DNA of 37,118 nt, taken from assembly GCA_013115145.1 (NCBI GenBank), contig JAAPAO010000352.1:1-37118 (forward strand), given 5' to 3'. The DNA comes from Perkinsus chesapeaki ATCC PRA-425. Lineage: Eukaryota > Protista > Perkinsozoa. Numbering within the stretch: position 1 is the stretch's first letter; each line of letters begins with the position of its first letter. Position numbers and translations under genes: made by a program. The notes below the pieces were generated by a model. That model was not told the DNA's origin. It saw only the letters and a list, made by a program, of their open reading frames with translations, and did no database searches. Below are positions 25,162 through 36,589 of this stretch, piece by piece.

Positions 25162-25206
25162 GTCGCATCGCGCCTGCAATAAGGCGTCTCCGTGCTATTA
25201 ATGTAT

Positions 25207-25408
25207 GTCGACTGTACTCGAACAGGATCACTTATGTAGTGATTTCCTTTCGTTCACAAGAGTACTCTTGACAAAACCCTAAACCGTGATGAGGAGTTGT
25301 ATACCTTTCCACCCTAATGGAGGTTTAGTCAATACAATAATGTATTCGACTTCGATGATCCATTTACTCTTTTAAGAGTTATTGGGTGTGGGTATTGCTG
25401 AGCGGTTT
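25207..25408 (+). ncRNA. U3: U3 snoRNA, copy 1
   Basis: 5' GTCGACTGTACT (box A'), AGGATCA (box A), GTGATGA (C'), CGATGAT (C), GCTGA (D), closing stem AAACCG/CGGTTT, about 200 nt. Box B is not clearly canonical. Confidence 0.85.
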
Positions 25409-25829
25409 AATTGTCAACCACGTTCTTCCACCTGTCTAGGAATCGTACTCACTGACGAAGCTGTGCCCAACCATACGATGCCGCTTGGTCCGTTTCGAGA
25501 AGTGAGTCGCTCTTATCTTTTAACAAAAAGCCTTCCTTGCAACAGGAGCTCAACAGTAGATTGTCATCGGTAGAGGCCTCATTGTGCGGTCTTGCTCGGG
25601 GGGTAGCTCGATTATCTCAAGTAGGACTATACCTGTCTATCCGTGCTACAGTTTGCGACTCTGTCGGAAATCTCAGATAGTTGGAGTCTTCCCTGGTATC
25701 AAAGCGGATGATCTCGAGAAAGATGTAGATGTTAACGTTCTTCAGTGGCGGGATTGCGCTAATAACATGGTGCTTCTTACTACATGTACTTCATAACGAG
25801 ATTCCTGAGCAATCGTAGGCAATACGCGT

Positions 25830-27385: not shown

Positions 27386-28054
27386 ATGATCAGACGGTTT
27401 TTCAGTTCCCCTGCCGCTACCAACGCTTATGAGAAATCGGTAAGTCGAATAGGGCAGCTAATATTCCCCGAATCTTGTGAGTAAAGTTGGCATCTAGATA
27501 ACATCGGTGTTCCTCATTTTGTAGTTTTATCGGATCAATCGTCTCATCGTCGTTTATTTCAGTTGGAGGCATTGCTGAGGGCGACTTTATCAGCAACTGC
27601 AACCAAAGTCGAAGATGTTTCGGGTGGATGTGGTTCAAGCTATCGAGTGGAGGTTGAATCCCCCAAATTTGTTGGTACTGCGGGGGAATCTTCCGCGGCG
27701 ATCGGGACGAGCATCAAGCTAGGATACCTTTTTTGTCGCATTGTTATCATCGTCTCTATTGAACGCGAATGCTTTCCCTATTTTCTCTCACAATCCTTTG
27801 TATTAATTTTTCTATGTCTCAGTAAGCTTGGAAAATGCATCTATGTTGGTGCATAGAATCCACGACTTGATCCACTATCACCCACTATTAGTGTATTATT
27901 GACTGTAGGCCTTCCTAAGATCAAGCAACATCAGATGGTAAATAATGCATTGAGGGATGAGATAAAGAAATGGCACGCTATAACGATAATAACCAAGCCT
28001 ACCACCGCTGCCAGCGGTGACGCCGCCGCCGGCGAAGTACAGTCGAAGGAGTGA
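27386..28054 (+). CDS. BolA: BolA-family protein with mitochondrial-type presequence
   Basis: MIRRFFSSPAATTLMRNR leader, KVEDVSGGCGSSYRVEVESPKFVG|LPKIKQHQMVNNALRDEIKKWHAITIIT. Confidence 0.88.
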
Positions 28055-28135
28055 CTGAATATTAATTATGTTTCTCGACGATTTGTGGGGTTTGATTTTG
28101 AGAGCTGACTATGGTTATTCAGTTTTTATTATTTG

Positions 28136-30310
28136 ATGGTTTTGGCTGAAAGCTCCTCCTCGGAACAGCAGCAGCAGCAGTCGCCTCAAGTAAGGTCTTG
28201 AGGTGGCCTGAGCAGCAGCACGTGGTGTTTGTCAGATTCCCGGCATGGATACTGTGTCTGGTAGCTCGGCGTCATCAAATGGAAGTATAGAAGGAAGGGA
28301 AAGTGGATCACAGAATGGTAGTAGGATCAGATGGTGGATAGGAATGCGTCGTGATAGGGGGGAATATATCAATATAATTTTAATAAATATATCAATAATA
28401 TTTTACATTGCTTTGGTATGCTGCACTTGCCGCTTGCTCGCCTACTGATAATCTAGCTGCCAGTCTAGTTTCGTCAGTCAGTTAATTTGAGGTGTGAAGC
28501 ACCACCGGCGTCAACGTTGTTCGTGCCATACTGAAACTCAGCTTGTCTTTGTCAATCTTTATTTGGTACTCGCGCCATTAGGCGACCATAGATCTAGTAG
28601 TATTGTTATCGTATATAGTAGGTTCTACTAGCAGAAGGCACACAATAGGAGGAAGTTCCACATCAACTTCGTCTGTCCGAGAGGTTCCGCGAAGGTAATC
28701 CGTGTTGCTGGAATTAGTATCACATTTCCTTCAAATCATCGTCAGGCTTACTACTCTTGACCAGCAATCTGGCATTCGGTACATACCTCTTGGAATTCGG
28801 CATGACAGCTTTGAGGTCGAGCGCCATCAGAGGCTCCTAAAGACCAAGTAGGCCGTTTTAGAATCGATAAAGACACTACGAAGCTGGAAGGTGTCGAGCT
28901 ACTCCAGCACCGAATAGGACGGCTTCGAAAGCCTTCGTGTTTTCTGCCACTTGCCCACTAAGAAATAAGAGTTCCGCACTGCTGATATTGGGGGTTTTAT
29001 GGAATACTATCATAGCTTCCCTAATCGCTGGGAAGCCACTCTCAAGAGCTTTAGAAAGGCGTAGGAACCAACGAAATATCTTTTTAGAGCATTCGAAAAT
29101 AGCAACTATTTCCCTTCGTGGGCCACGCTGTAAGTAAAGACAGCTATTTTGGCGGCTAAGTAGGTATTATACGGAACGGTTCATACTTGTTCGTACTGTC
29201 CTGTTGGATGCCGCCCTTCCCGTAGGTTTTGCCGGTTCGGTCAGAACTGTGAATTCGCTCGAAAGGGGCAGTGCTTCTTCGTACATGCCCCGCAAGAGCT
29301 CAAGTACAGGCCGCCAAGGCCAGATGGATATCCGGTAGGATGTCACGCGCCACGAAATTATCGTGGTTAGTGTTTGTTGTAGCAGGGGGAATCTTAGTTA
29401 AATTTCGTTACGCGGCGCACTGCGAAGATTTCAGGTACGAGATCGTGCTGCCGAAGGGTACGATGATTATGATAATTACTATTACGGTGATGGCGAATAC
29501 TATCCTAATGGACAGTATTACGACAATCCGTCTAACGAAACAGAAGTAGTCGAAGGATACCAACAGCAAGAAGATGGTTATGGATACCAAACTGTTGAGG
29601 TGAAATCGATTGAGTGATCGATTTTGTGGAAGATATCTGTAGGCTCAAGTTGGAAGGAAGACTTCATCGACTGAGCCGGCGCTGGTCGCCATGGAGTTGG
29701 CGATTCAAGTGAGCGTGTTGGTAATTTTATGAAGTCGATAGGCGTTCCCAGATTCGAGATTTCGTTACCACTCAAGATAGATTACAGTTGCTTGTTCAAG
29801 CAATGAACGTCTTGGCGAGCAGTGAGGCAGCGGAAGGGGATAAATCTTCATGTGAGCCTGGTGATGGTCCCGAGTTCTATCCCTGGTGAAGGTGTTCATC
29901 AATTTAGACTCTCTAAATATCTTGTTTGCTCTCCTGATTATTACGTTATCCGAGTGTCATCTTATGATTCATCGCTGTGCTCCCAGGTGGAATTGGTAAT
30001 GTGGCGTCAACTCTGGCGACGTCTTTCGGAGGATCTCCAGCTACCTCTTCCACCAGAACCGAAGTTACACCGGACAAAGAGAATAAGCGCCCATCAGGCG
30101 CCCAACCGGTGAGTTTGGTGGATAAAGCGTTGGTTAGAGAAAGCTGCACCATGTCTTTTGTTGTATGGACAGTCAAGTGGCGGATATCCGATAAAATTAG
30201 AAGATCATATACAGCAAACAAACTTTGCCAAATTGGACGCTCCCAGCGAAAAAGCGGCTGCTGCTGTCACCACCGCTGAGATGTCTGCGAATTCCTGCGC
30301 CCAACAGTGA
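28136..30310 (+). CDS. Hypothetical protein, many small exons
   Basis: Series of AG/GT-bounded open segments (RRHTIGGSSTSTSSVREVPRR, FEVERHQRLLKTK, IRDFVTTQDRLQLLVQAMNVLAS). No family recognised and the 3' end is uncertain. Confidence 0.55.
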
Positions 30311-30866: not shown

Positions 30867-33800
30867 ATGAGCCTGCGTGTTGGCAGTGCTAACCTTAATA
30901 TGATTCTAGCATCCGGTCGATTGTCTTTGATACTTGCTCTTCTTAATATCCTCAAGGTTGAGGGAAACAATTGGCTGCTGCAATGCAGTAGTTGTGTGGA
31001 TCAGAGCATGTAAGGTTGCTCTCTTAGGTTGCACGCGTGCGCACGTCGTCTATGACAGGTTTGGCGACATATCTCTGAAAAGCGATATTCAACCGGCAAA
31101 TCAAACTAAGCTTTATGAACAGCTCCGGAAAATGCAGGTATACGAGGTTCTTGCTCTGTTGAAGCTCTGAGATATCTTAATGCTGTTCAACCTTTGGAGT
31201 ATCTTTAATCAATTCGACCTTTGGAGTATCTTCTTCCCTTCAACCTCAAAATATGTGTCAGTTGCGTGAGTTCACCCATACAGAGCGCGAGTTCTTCAAT
31301 AAGTTCTTCGCTACAAGACAACTAGGTCTGATTGCACAAGAGTTACAAACGGTTATACCAGAAGCAGTATCACTCATACCAGAAAGAAGGTAAGCTCCAA
31401 AGATATCTTCTTGGGAGAGTTTCGCAAACTCGGAAAGGAGACTTCCTTATCCGGCTTGCTATTGGCGAATTGCTCTTTACACGTCTACCAAGTTTAGTGA
31501 CTAAACTCGTTCTTGGAGGTTACTAGCCCTCTGCCGTTAGAACTACAGTAGGCCATATTGGCCAACATAAAGAAACCCGCGCTGCCTCAGAAATTGGCCG
31601 AGAGAGATCACCATTCTACGCTCGCTCGCAAAATGTCCCTACGTGCGAATGGATAGGCCTCCCTTGGCTCCTCCGCTTCTGCCCTGGAGGGGGGCACAAC
31701 GTAACACGTGACGTAGACAACTTGACTGAATTCAGAAATGTCACAATTGTATAGAAAGACTTCGATGAACATAGGAGAATCTAACTGGTCAAGGTCGGAG
31801 TTCGTATTCTATCCGTTAATGCAATTCACTTTCTATGCGGGGCTCAAGCGCTGCCATTGTGCAACATTATCTCTCAGGTGGACGTCACTTAATGGTACAC
31901 AATCACGCACTAAGAATGTGTAGGTCATCATCATTATTGACATGCTCATACCGTCTTATTCTCATCTCAATATGTTAAGATACATGCTTCGAGAGGCGCA
32001 TCTTTTGATGACAGCCTTGGGGGCACTGCAAGAGTTATCTGGACGCCATGAACATATGGCTGGCGACTACTGGGAAAGGTGGGGTTTTGTCACTGCGCCA
32101 CAAAATTATTTCGTTGAACTAAGTGTATGATATTTTTGCCTCAGAGTTCAAAAATGGAGCGATGAGATGAATAAAATGCAAGCTGAAATGAACAAAGTCA
32201 GCGAGGAGCAATCAAGGCAGACAGAGAAAGTTCAGAGTCTTAATACAAAGGTGTGTAGGAGTATCAAGGACGATGGTCGTGACGTCGTCGTGGAATAGGT
32301 TCATGTTGTCAATCATGATCTGGATCGCCTTGAGACCTCAGTAAAGGTGGCAGATGAACGGGGAAAGAAACAAGAATTTGAAGTTGGTAGACTTAAAGAG
32401 GATCATCGACATTTTACGTCCAGAGTTGAAGATAAAATTGGGTAAGAGGAAGAGGGTGATGATGGTGAGCAATCTGGCGAATATACAGCTTCAAATTAGG
32501 AGTCGGATTAATAAGTTATACTTGATCTAGGCTCGAGTGGAGTGTGATTTATTGCGTGACTTGCTGCGGGCTTACGCGCAGAACAATAGTAGCGGAAATC
32601 GTAATGAACTTGTTGACTTCTGTGGCAATTCGCCACTGGCGAAGAGTCCAAAACGCATACCAGTACATTTGGATGCTCCACTGAATCTCCTCTTGTTGGA
32701 GCTAGTGAATGGCGGGAACCATCTTCTCCTACTCCAGTAGGAGTAAGGAAAGGCCATTCAGTTGTTATAGATTGGCTTTCTTCCTTGTAGCGTCATGGTG
32801 GCTAGCCTTATGTAACAATTATTATTATCCTGAACGTTTGGTCCGTACTGCTGTTGTTAGACTGTCTGCTGTGTAGGTTGTTGTTGAAGGAGATGACTCA
32901 AAGGGAAGAAGCTTTGAGCAGAGAGAAGCTAGAAATGCGAAATGCGATCGAATTGGAGGCAGAGAGAAGCAGTCGATCGCTGGGTAGACTAACTGACGAT
33001 TTGTGCAAGGAGTGGTAGGAGTCGTTTACAGGTGACCTGAAGGATACGCTCTCGGCATTGCGATCGCTGCACTACTCGCTGGCATTCCTCGTTGAGGAAT
33101 ACAGACGGGATGCCCTGGAAAGGGGAGAGACTATGAAGGAAAGTGTTGATGAGATGCAAGTGAAGTTGACTAGGCTTAAGTAAGAAGTGAGAAGGGTTAG
33201 CTGCCGTTGAGCTCGCCATTGGTCAGCAACTCTTTGGTTGAGTACGACCGATTCTATCGGGAGCAGTTGGTGAAGTTGGAAGAGGCGAAAGAGAAAGATC
33301 GAAGGAGAATGAAGCTGATTGAGTCGAATGTGACAGAATTGTGGAAGGCCATGGATAAGCAAGCCAGTGCCGACTTGGTGGAGTTGACCAAAAGAGTAGG
33401 GCTGGCGAGTGGTGGCGGGTTTCGGTAACGGTGTTTCAGGCGGAGCTTGAGGTCGAAGGAACTATGGCAAAGATACGATTGGAGAAGATGCGTCTAGAGA
33501 TGGAGAGGGATAATATGGAGAGGCAAAGAGAGCTCCAGCAACAGGCAGACGAACATCAAGATGAGTGAGGCCTTCTTGAACAGTGACTCAGGATTTAAGC
33601 CGCCTCGATATTTAGACTGCATCGGCGTCGAACAGCGGCCGAGTCGGAGCGTAGAGAGGCACACGATGCTAGATTGATAGAAATGCAGGAGGAGAGCCAG
33701 ATAAGGTGCGTAGTGGTCGCTGTGATAGTAGATGATGACGTTAGTTAGGCAACAGCACAGTGCTCATACACTAGAAATGGAGCGGCTAAATAGGACAGTT

Positions 33801-35656
33801 GAGGCTGACCGAGAAAAGGTTGAGGTAAGACGACCTCGAGGATAGTGAGAAATGATTTCTCTGGCTCAGGCGGAGAGTCGTAAGGAGGTGGAGTTGGCTC
33901 GAGTGAGAGAGGAAGCTCGATTGAGGGACAGAAGAGAGAATGAAGATATCAATTTGAGAGAGATAGCTGCCAAAGCACAGCATGATATCCAAGCGATGGA
34001 AGCGAAAGCGAAGGAAGACCGGGAAACAGCTTTACAGGTCGGTGATGGTTGCAGTATTGATTGTCTGATATGTTATTCATCAGAACCTACGAGAATCTGT
34101 TCATCAAGTTCGAGAATCCGTAAAATGGTTCTTCTCCTCCCCAACTCAAGTGCTACGTAGCGTCGCCTTTTTAGCGGGTAAGGTGGTGAGTTTGCAGATC
34201 AGTAGCGATTTAGCTCGTATTACTTATATTTATCATTTTGGCACCAGGCTGGTGCAAGCTAACAATCAGCAACGGGGGCAGCAATAAGCTCAGCTTACTG
34301 TCGAGGTGTTTCTGCAATATCAGGTTGCGCGGCATCTATTTACTTCACTCGTGAGATGGCGATGCTTGCCAGAGATCAGCTTAATAAACGCCTTGGCAAA
34401 CCAAGCCTGCTTCGAAGGACGAGTCGGAAATCATTGTTACATGTAGGTTAATAGTTCATCACGTTTAGCGGAGCGAAGCGGATATTTTCATTTCAGGACC
34501 TGAGAGATTGGCTTCTACATCGTAAGGCTCCATCGCGAGTATTTTCGGATGTTGTACTTCGACCAGATCATTTAATAACGATAAAGCGTCTTGCTGATGC
34601 AACTCGTAGGATCATTACTGCTCTGGAATAGACGGACGATGACCTCTCTAACAGGCACAGCGAAAAGGCGAGGCCAGCCTTTATTGCATTGTATGTTCTA
34701 TGGTCCACCAGGGACAGGGAAAACAATGACTGCAGAGAGATTTGCTGAGTACCGCTGCTGTTGAATCTATCGGATTTGGAGAATTGGTTTAGATACTCTG
34801 GACTGGAATATGCGATAATGTGTGGAGCTGACGTGGCACCTTTGAACGAATCCGCAGTCACTGAGCTTCACAGTCTCTTCGATTGGGTCAAGAAGAGTCG
34901 TCGAGGCGTGCTTCTCTTTATTGATGAGGCTGACGCATTTCTTGGTAGGTTGCTAGTCTGTTATTTATGTAGCTGGTGCCAGGTGCGAGAACAGCAGGTA
35001 TGGGGGAACATATGCGAAATGCTTTAACAACGATGCTGTACCATACAGGGACATCGTCCTCGCAGTTCATGCTCGTCCTTGCGACCAATAGACCAGGAGA
35101 CCTTGATGCTGCAGTTCTTGATAGAATCGATGAGAGCGTCGAATTCGGGCTGCCAGACACTATTGAGCGACATATGATGTGTAGAATGTATTATGATAAA
35201 TATGTTGTGATGCCCATGGAGAAGGCAAAGATGACCAAACTGAAAATAAGTCGTCCCTCGAGCCCCCTACTGAAGGCCGCTGCGATAACAGTTACAAAGG
35301 GTAGCAGATCGGCGCCAAGCGCGGCACGGAAAACGGCGAGTGTTAGACGACGCAGTCGACCGCGTGTTGAGGAGGCAAGTCCGGAGGAGAGCTGCGGAGT
35401 ACCTGAAGGTTACCAGGATCTTGCAGTCGACGACAGTTGCCTTCGCAGAATCGCGGAACGGCTTTCGGGCTTCAGTGGTCGAGAAATTGCAAAGTTGTTT
35501 ATGTCGCTTCAAACGCATATATATTCACTGGGCATAGAGTCAATTGAAGGCGTTAAAGAAGGTGTACTAAATGACGTGGTCGAGTCTAAGCTGGCAGAGC
35601 ACTCCCAAACGGTTGATATGATGGATAATGGCTACAAGTACAGAGGAAGCCGATAA
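30867..35656 (+). CDS. Fusion protein: hydrophobic leader, Peptidase_S74/ICA domain, long coiled coil, ATAD3-type N-domain, AAA+ ATPase
   Basis: [43 protein letters not shown] (S74/ICA). [68 protein letters not shown] (ATAD3). Exon phases are consistent between the domains. Confidence 0.8.
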
Positions 35657-36055: not shown

Positions 36056-36099
36056 CTCAAATCTCACCCCAATAAGGCGCCTCCGTTCTATTAATGTAT

Positions 36100-36301
36100 G
36101 TCGACTGTACTCGAACAGGATCACTCATGTAGTGATTTCCTTTCGTTCACAAGAGTACTCGTGACAAAACCCTAAACCGTGATGAGGAGTTGTATACCTT
36201 TCTACCCTAATGGAGGTTTAGTCAATACAATAATGTATTCGACATCGATGATCCATTTACTCTTTTAAGAGTTATTGGGTGTGGGTATTGCTGAGCGGTT
36301 T
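36100..36301 (+). ncRNA. U3: U3 snoRNA, copy 2
   Basis: Same boxes as copy 1, with 4 substitutions over about 200 nt. The shared block extends 36071-36311 versus 25178-25418. Confidence 0.85.
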
Positions 36302-36589
36302 AACTGTCAACTAAGTTTTATTTTGACTGATTAGTTTGGTTGATGTATGAATTATTTACGATAAAAGTCCAATAACTTTTGAGCAAAGGCTGTTGAGCAC
36401 CTGAAAATCAGTTAAAGACAGCTTGTTTCATCGATAGTTGTTGGGATATCCGTACTAAGTAAGCATCTCTGGAAGCCATGATAGTAATTTACTACGACGA
36501 TATTGTACGAGATACTGTATGTTGATGCGAAAGTGCTGCCAGCGTGAAGCTGAAGCCTATGCCAATAACTTGCTTGATACACTATCTAA

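Follow-up and report, generated by a model that had tools for sequence, protein, structure and literature searches.

In animals, ATAD3 is an essential protein of the mitochondrial inner membrane that holds its ATPase in the matrix, and its arrangement across the two mitochondrial membranes is debated. The Plasmodium protein, PfATAD3 (PF3D7_0707400), is mitochondrial and essential and belongs to a megadalton complex, according to a 2026 paper that describes itself as the first study of ATAD3 in a unicellular eukaryote, gives the domains of the protein as ATAD3_N, AAA and putative membrane helices only, and makes no mention of an ICA-type domain (PMC13249166). In the tail spikes and fibers of phages, the ICA domain, known in Pfam as Peptidase_S74, stands at the C-terminus and removes itself by self-cleavage once it has folded its trimeric beta-helical passenger, while in the eukaryotic membrane protein MYRF its C-terminal helix leads into a helical stalk. 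Here we describe a gene that joins the two, at positions 30900-35656 on the forward (+) strand of a stretch of 37,118 nucleotides (nt) from the protist Perkinsus chesapeaki ATCC PRA-425 (assembly GCA_013115145.1, contig JAAPAO010000352.1, positions 1 to 37,118; hereafter the window).

The encoded protein shares with human ATAD3A and PfATAD3 an ATAD3_N coiled coil, a single membrane helix followed by the motif RLGKPSL, and an AAA+ ATPase with Walker A and B motifs and an arginine finger. Unlike animal ATAD3, it has a cleavable-type leader, a CxxC peptide, an ICA domain and about 200 extra helical residues in place of the proline-rich animal N-terminus; the nearest homologs without an ICA domain are the ATAD3s of plants and algae. 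The ICA domain of MYRF is the best match of its N-terminal domain in sequence and in structure, yet the Perkinsus protein lacks the NDT80 DNA-binding domain that lies upstream in MYRF (Pfam scans of the spliced protein gave no NDT80-type match, and the leader and a 13-residue motif alone precede the ICA domain), has about 15 residues before the cleavage position and a glycine there instead of serine, and places its membrane helix about 400 residues downstream of the ICA domain, followed by the ATPase. With the phage proteins (endosialidase 3gw6, phi29 gp12 3gud, T5 pb1 4uw8/8hqz) it shares the fold, the motifs (S)D..LK and G.IAQE....P.AV, and the closing helix, whereas the Perkinsus domain stands at the N-terminus without a passenger (between leader and cleavage position there are just residues 23-38) and lacks the serine.

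We consider it likely that this spliced-leader trans-spliced gene, of 20 exons and 943 residues, is the Perkinsus ortholog of ATAD3 in an alveolate-stramenopile form, with the ICA domain capping the stalk of a mitochondrial inner-membrane protein. A preliminary description of the window, made from the letters alone, had proposed the fusion and left open whether the architecture was already catalogued. It is, as automatic Pfam domain lists; no describing paper was found in the searchable literature, nor any linking ATAD3 to S74/ICA or Peptidase_S74 to AAA. Within that literature the conserved ICA-ATAD3 fusion is apparently undescribed, as a variant of the known ATAD3 family.

One gene from leader to ATPase

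Judged by its relatives, the ICA and ATAD3 parts are encoded by a single gene. The relative P0167 is one uninterrupted open reading frame (ORF) of 807 residues (L001, 3001-5424) that carries PF13884, PF12037 and PF00004, with 43% identity to the P. chesapeaki protein in the N-terminal part and 56% in the ATPase. The same three domains are present in nine of the ten closest representatives scanned, complete transcript-derived ORFs (from MMETSP and the EukProt transcriptome shotgun assemblies) carry the same architecture, and the ICA domain lies N-terminal to ATAD3 in 127 of 179 long homologs. The orthologs from Perkinsus olseni (P0001 and P0165, 66-85% identical to the P. chesapeaki protein) have the same exon pattern; their intron 7 keeps the same position and phase, with a GTGAGT donor, and its 310 nt cannot be aligned to the 435 nt of the P. 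chesapeaki intron. Transcripts ending before about 32880 would have meant two genes, and on this point the earlier proposal of one gene that links an S74/ICA domain with ATAD3_N, a membrane helix and an AAA+ ATPase with intact motifs holds: relatives encode the whole architecture in one ORF or one complete transcript.

The exon chain was built by hand from the sequence and then translated, giving 20 exons and 943 residues with a single terminal stop and GT..AG borders at all 19 introns. The phase-consistent chain of the preliminary description is thereby borne out, and all the peptides cited there are present, including Walker A (GPPGTGKT) and Walker B (LLFIDEAD). The usual intron length is 38-66 nt, the outliers being introns 2 (124 nt), 3 (488 nt), 7 (435 nt) and 15 (146 nt); introns 3 (31390-31877) and 7 (32442-32876) contain no tRNA, Rfam match or repeat. 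For exon 10, a candidate acceptor at 33212 was replaced by 33227, which agrees with P. olseni and with the deposited model. The product is the same as residues 448-1385 of P0166, the deposited P. chesapeaki protein (1385 residues, "ATPase AAA domain-containing protein"), except for the five residues ARTAG, which the deposited model skips and the P. olseni ortholog has. The features of the gene are as follows.

30885-30886, + strand: trans-splice AG acceptor, from the spliced-leader cDNA; mRNA body from 30887
30900-30965, + strand: start codon and hydrophobic leader, residues 1-22; first ATG after the spliced-leader junction, Kyte-Doolittle (KD) hydropathy 1.98
30966-31004, + strand: NWLxQCxxC motif with CxxC pair, residues 23-35, from alignments
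31010-31058, + strand: intron 1 (49 nt, GT..AG), skipped in the cDNA
31059-31137, 31262-31389, 31878-31919, 31980-32078, + strand: exons 2-5, carrying the ICA domain
31063-32076, + strand: ICA / Peptidase_S74-fold domain, residues 39-152, exons 2-5; from Pfam, profile search, AlphaFold2 (AF2), Foldseek and pN/pS
31063-31080, + strand: degenerate S74 cleavage motif G39-D-I-S-L-K44 (consensus S-D-x-x-L-K), from alignments
32077-33347, + strand: helical/coiled-coil linker, residues 153-361 (end of exon 5, exons 6-9, start of exon 10), from AF2; includes intron 7 (32442-32876)
32145-32250, 32299-32441, 32877-32983, 33032-33179, + strand: exons 6-9, linker
33348-34415, + strand: ATAD3_N, residues 362-592, exons 10-16; PF12037, 63.4 bits (cut-off 25), E 2.6e-17
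34150-34346, + strand: membrane helix, residues 553-569, split by the 146-nt intron 15; KD 1.65, second strongest hydrophobic segment
34693-35152, + strand: AAA+ ATPase core, residues 651-776; PF00004, 77.1 bits (cut-off 21.2), Pfam residues 651-771
34702-34725, 34911-34934 and 35114-35134, + strand: Walker A motif, Walker B motif and the region of the arginine finger (VLDRIDE)
35243-35419, + strand: basic low-complexity insertion in the lid/C-terminal region, residues 807-865, poorly conserved
35654-35656, + strand: stop codon TAA

The 5' end and intron 1 are defined by a 350-nt cDNA contig from a small 454 metatranscriptome, 100% identical to the window. At its own 5' end this cDNA carries 22 loose nucleotides that match the dinoflagellate/Perkinsus spliced leader (sequence for comparison from PMC3101222), joined at 30886/30887. 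Because the spliced leader is joined at the AG of 30885-30886, the mRNA starts at 30887 and its first ATG is at 30900 (MILASG...); the start at 30867 given in the preliminary description lies upstream of the acceptor and is replaced by this one. In the deposited P0166 the same acceptor is joined to upstream exons (27386-30304) that encode a BolA domain and a CCCH zinc finger. The unspliced upstream frame ends in CAQQ* (stop 30308-30310), two codons past those exons, the P. olseni leader exon has its own ATG right after an in-frame TAG, and all full-length relatives start with methionine and a hydrophobic leader. For these reasons, together with the spliced-leader junction, the first 447 residues of P0166 are wrongly prepended from the upstream BolA and CCCH zinc-finger genes.

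Several smaller observations touch the gene models. The P. olseni "variant 2" models show a similar merge, though BolA is called separately there. At 34945-34997 the deposited acceptor lies 15 nt downstream of 34982/34983, whereby ARTAG is lost, and both P. olseni and other ATAD3s have residues at that place. The cDNA (30887-31251) has intron 1 spliced out, intron 2 retained and a poly(A)-like tail near 31246-31251; with intron 2 retained it would encode 73 residues, with a stop at 31168-31170, and its poly(A)-like end may come from premature intronic polyadenylation or be an artifact of oligo-dT priming. The sequence that bears the intronless gene (L001, 1-8424) is very compact, with genes 50-120 nt apart and DHHC, TPT and EamA transporter genes near.

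The ICA domain, its cleavage motif and the stalk

The N-terminal domain is of the ICA/S74 fold and closest to the ICA domain of MYRF, since Pfam, a profile search of the PDB and structural modeling agree. In the spliced protein, PF13884 (Peptidase_S74) matches residues 40-99 at 32.8-35.5 bits against a cut-off of 22, and exon 3 alone, at 23.6 bits, is above the cut-off, so the lack of a Peptidase_S74 match that would have told against the preliminary description was not found. Searched against the PDB, a profile of 31 N-terminal regions matched the MYRF ICA domain (7dc3) over the whole domain at E 4.8e-19, followed by the phage T5 tail fiber at 6.7e-5. An AF2 model of residues 1-203, with a mean predicted local distance difference test score (pLDDT) of 90, has the beta core and the long C-terminal helix of the ICA fold, and the 13 best PDB matches that Foldseek returned for it are all ICA domains (7dc3 at E 6e-8, endosialidase 3gw6, phi29 3gud, T5 4uw8). 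The last ICA helix, from residue 125, continues straight into the stalk in this model.

Comparison of the two Perkinsus species over 129 ICA codons gives 89% amino-acid identity, with pN 0.061 and pS 0.84, at which synonymous sites are saturated. In the ICA domain 6% of nonsynonymous sites differ, against 3% for the AAA core and 23% for the coiled coil. Purifying selection on the ICA domain is about as strong as on the membrane-proximal linker; the dN/dS of ATAD3_N was left out as unreliable, since tblastn ran through introns there. Because synonymous sites are saturated and yet only 6% of nonsynonymous sites differ, the ICA domain is not decaying in Perkinsus.

The cleavage motif is another matter. 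In endosialidase and in MYRF, the nucleophile of the ICA domain is the residue at the scissile bond. Both Perkinsus species have Gly39 in place of this serine and keep Asp40 and Lys44, so a serine nucleophile at the scissile bond with lysine at +5 is absent. The domain is thus of ICA fold but, by its motif, probably not an active S74 peptidase, and self-cleavage, the property of S74/ICA domains that the preliminary description had cited, is unlikely in Perkinsus because the nucleophile is a glycine. Across 113 relatives, the nucleophile position is Ser in 49, Gly in 33, Ala in 8 and Cys in 2, while 21 are without the D..K pattern; those of the 21 that can be placed belong to the stramenopile type and usually carry Tyr in place of Lys. 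An alignment of 38 close relatives shows no variation at Asp+1 and Lys+5. On a tree computed from the sequence downstream of the ICA domain, which excludes the columns of the trait itself, the Ser/Gly/Ala state switches at least 18 times, in some cases from one sister sequence to the other. The serine changes freely and the D and K are fixed among close relatives; therefore the serine is dispensable and the rest of the motif is not, which points to a structural rather than proteolytic role of the motif in many lineages, Perkinsus among them. Cysteine takes the place of the nucleophile serine in P0040 (Durusdinium) and P0269 (EukProt), as CDKRLK / CDKRVK, and could still permit self-cleavage.

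Downstream of the ICA domain, the full-length AF2 model (mean pLDDT 67) has helices at residues 125-207, 223-302, 304-497 and 501-546, a membrane helix at 550-584 and an AAA+ fold, with pLDDT below 50 at 796-859 (in the 938-residue deposited numbering), which is the disordered basic insertion. About 420 residues of near-continuous helix, beginning as the C-terminal helix of the ICA domain, thus lie between that domain and the membrane region. The single membrane helix stands between ATAD3_N and AAA and is followed by the ATAD3 hallmark motif RLGKPSL; ATAD3_N followed by AAA is the Pfam order of the ATAD3 family. The two Walker motifs, the sensor and the arginine-finger region are all intact, in columns of the alignment that do not vary.

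Distribution and descent

The named carriers of the fusion are P. olseni, P. chesapeaki, Amoebophrya (Syndiniales), Noctiluca, Durusdinium, the labyrinthulid Hondaea, which has the textbook motif SDERLKTN, and Chrysophaeum. A hidden Markov model (HMM) of the family also matches the N-termini of three Phytophthora ATAD3s (E 1e-25 to 1e-28); it matches none of nine ATAD3s from green algae and Brassica. In an independent check, one Phytophthora N-terminus taken by itself matched nothing in the PDB but the MYRF ICA domain (E 3.7e-8). The oomycete, pelagophyte-like and other stramenopile-type copies tested (Phytophthora, Chrysophaeum, P0147) have co-linear matches to Peptidase_S74 and MYRF_ICA that fall below the Pfam threshold, and for that reason databases do not flag them. 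In the Atlas, the divergent group adjoins oomycete and diatom ATAD3 clusters of 730-770 residues.

The ICA-bearing proteins form one clade with support of 100 against a green-plant outgroup in a FastTree analysis, and the clade spans Perkinsus, Syndiniales, Noctiluca, core dinoflagellates, labyrinthulids, oomycetes and a pelagophyte-like alga. The survey covers the relatives that are taxonomically named, which are only some of them; Apicomplexa, ciliates, Rhizaria, haptophytes and cryptophytes are unplaced. Among the best 120 homologs of the Perkinsus ATPase domain no second Perkinsus ATAD3 was found, the Perkinsus entries there being all ICA-bearing. Since these are the sole Perkinsus proteins in that set, the ICA-ATAD3 is the ATAD3 of the lineage and not an additional machine, and the distinct membrane-anchored machine proposed in the preliminary description gives way to the ordinary ATAD3 of this group. 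In the sequences compared, dinoflagellates, Perkinsus, oomycetes and other stramenopiles usually have their ATAD3 in this ICA-fused form.

Leader, placement and possible role

No other stretch of the protein is as hydrophobic as the leader. Among 68 full-length NWL-type relatives its median length is about 24 residues; in 66 of them a G, A, S or T stands just before N-W-L, and in 61 an A, V or T occupies position -3. By this pattern the end of the leader is the signature of a type I signal-peptidase-type site, with predicted sites VEG|NNWLL in P. chesapeaki and VAA|NNWLL in P. olseni. In the peptide that follows, NWLxQCxxCxDQ, both cysteines are invariant in 77 of 77 NWL-type relatives; N-glycosylation sequons, which would mark exposure to the endoplasmic reticulum (ER) lumen, are not conserved, being present in 19 and 24 of the same 77. 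A second subfamily (P0040, P0101, P0051, P0061, P0069, P0258) is without NWLxQCxxC and keeps the canonical SDxRLK. It unites a dinoflagellate (Durusdinium) with a labyrinthulid (Hondaea), and may reflect paralogy or gene transfer.

In the mechanism that we propose, the leader would probably be cut by a type I signal peptidase, either of ER type or the mitochondrial inner-membrane peptidase, to leave a mature N-terminus NNWLLQC.... Placement in the mitochondrial inner membrane seems most likely, by analogy with animal and Plasmodium ATAD3: the ATPase would lie in the matrix, and the ICA-capped stalk would project into the intermembrane space or toward contact sites. The ICA domain itself would serve as a trimerizing and folding cap where the ATAD3 stalk is farthest from the membrane, and not as a protease, because the serine is a glycine in Perkinsus, Ser, Gly and Ala interchange among relatives, and Asp+1 and Lys+5 are lost only in the divergent stramenopile-type subgroup. 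In the relatives that keep Ser-Asp...Lys, self-cleavage may shed the short CxxC peptide. More speculatively, a three-fold ICA module on a six-fold ring could cross-link rings into larger assemblies.

Several points weigh against this account. The leader resembles a classical ER signal peptide, with its short n-region, hydrophobic core and small residues at -3 and -1, and the mitochondrial placement is made by homology. RNA cover in P. chesapeaki ends near 31246, so that exons 3-20 lie outside the sole cDNA, which retains intron 2; searches of RNA runs found the locus in one small 454 metatranscriptome only, with nothing past 31246, and two RNA runs labeled with the species itself held nothing of the locus. 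The structural models of the ICA domain and of the full protein are monomers, and trimerization is a prediction. Finally, the phylogeny comes from FastTree and has long branches in its stramenopile part.

The first of these points leads to the main open rival, which owes this standing to a leader that cannot be told from a secretory signal peptide. The protein may be not mitochondrial but a re-targeted ATAD3, whose leader is an ER signal peptide, with the ICA domain, stalk and ATAD3_N in the ER/secretory lumen or around a relict plastid, and the ATPase in the cytosol. The length of the leader, its hydrophobic core and its agreement with the -3/-1 rule, as in secretory signal peptides and in 66 of 68 relatives, would all suit such a route, as would an invariant CxxC in an oxidizing lumen. 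Yet the mitochondrial inner-membrane peptidase belongs to the signal-peptidase family and follows the same -3/-1 rule, the sequons are not conserved, and plastid-less oomycetes have the same leader. Moreover, this is apparently the sole ATAD3 of these lineages and groups as ATAD3 with a plant mitochondrial-type outgroup, and in Plasmodium ATAD3 is mitochondrial by microscopy and immuno-electron microscopy (PMC13249166). We therefore regard the ER/secretory route, which the preliminary description had also raised, as unlikely, though a serious competitor. Targeting to a cryptic plastid, which the preliminary description had raised, is itself unlikely in view of the same oomycete leader and the mitochondrial Plasmodium protein (PMC13249166).

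Other alternatives concern the gene and the ICA domain. The locus could hold two adjacent genes merged by prediction: a small protein of leader, ICA domain and coiled coil that ends at a TAA at 32442-32444, and a canonical ATAD3 of about 700 residues, trans-spliced at 32876/32877 and starting from the ATG in exon 8 (KEMTQ). Retention of intron 7 leads to an immediate stop (GGG TAA), this intron has 435 nt against 38-66 nt for most, and the ATG in exon 8 comes 14 nt after the AG and resembles a real 5' end; the sequence from exon 8 onward has about the size of a canonical ATAD3, the deposited model is over-merged at its 5' end, and RNA cover in this species stops short of the junction. What makes this division extremely unlikely is that the intronless relative spans the whole architecture in one ORF, as do dozens of complete transcript ORFs, that the ICA domain is N-terminal to ATAD3 in those 127 long homologs, that P. 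olseni retains the position and phase of intron 7 with its strong GTGAGT donor, and that exons 6-9 are conserved at the protein level between the two Perkinsus species. If the gene is one, its ICA domain might still cut itself in Perkinsus through another nucleophile, such as Ser42 in GDISLK, and mature like MYRF and the tail spikes; the invariance of Asp+1 and Lys+5 in 38 close relatives and the serine three residues past the glycine in both Perkinsus species would fit. We hold this to be very unlikely, since other glycine-type relatives lack a serine there (GDELVK, GDETIK, GDYMLK) and the nucleophile of characterized ICA domains sits at the scissile bond. The idea that the region is a functionless, decaying relic, with loss of the serine as its first sign, can draw on the missing nucleophile and on the stramenopile copies that are without the whole S-D..K motif, but it can scarcely be credited against the 89% identity at saturated synonymous sites, conservation above that of the coiled coil, and the confident AF2 model.

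Over a very large share of the eukaryotes, among them dinoflagellates, Perkinsus, Syndiniales, labyrinthulids and oomycetes such as Phytophthora, ATAD3 thus has at its N-terminus a domain that is elsewhere found in phage tail fibers and MYRF, with a cleavable-type leader and an invariant CxxC motif ahead of it. Beside MYRF, this is a second, old eukaryotic use of the ICA domain. The fusion offers a handle on the stoichiometry of the stalk (trimer versus hexamer), on import and maturation, and on a feature that sets this lineage apart in an essential protein of several parasites of animals and plants. A tentative extension, possible but on present evidence rather doubtful, is that the ICA-capped ATAD3 is ancestral to the whole stramenopile-alveolate lineage, including its parasites, that three-fold ICA caps and six-fold AAA+ rings on long stalks cross-link into a new kind of mitochondrial assembly, either a lattice or a scaffold at contact sites, as a possible explanation of the megadalton complex of Plasmodium, and that serine-type species mature by phage-style self-cleavage, shedding the CxxC peptide. 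If true, an organellar AAA+ protein would here for the first time be seen to undergo an autoproteolytic ICA step.

The window also carries a U3 small nucleolar RNA gene (Rfam RF01848, 97.7 bits) at 36101-36300, about 450 nt downstream of the ATAD3 stop. It lies within a repeat pair (25177-25424 / 36070-36317), whose other copy, 248 nt long at 25177-25424, is 96% identical.

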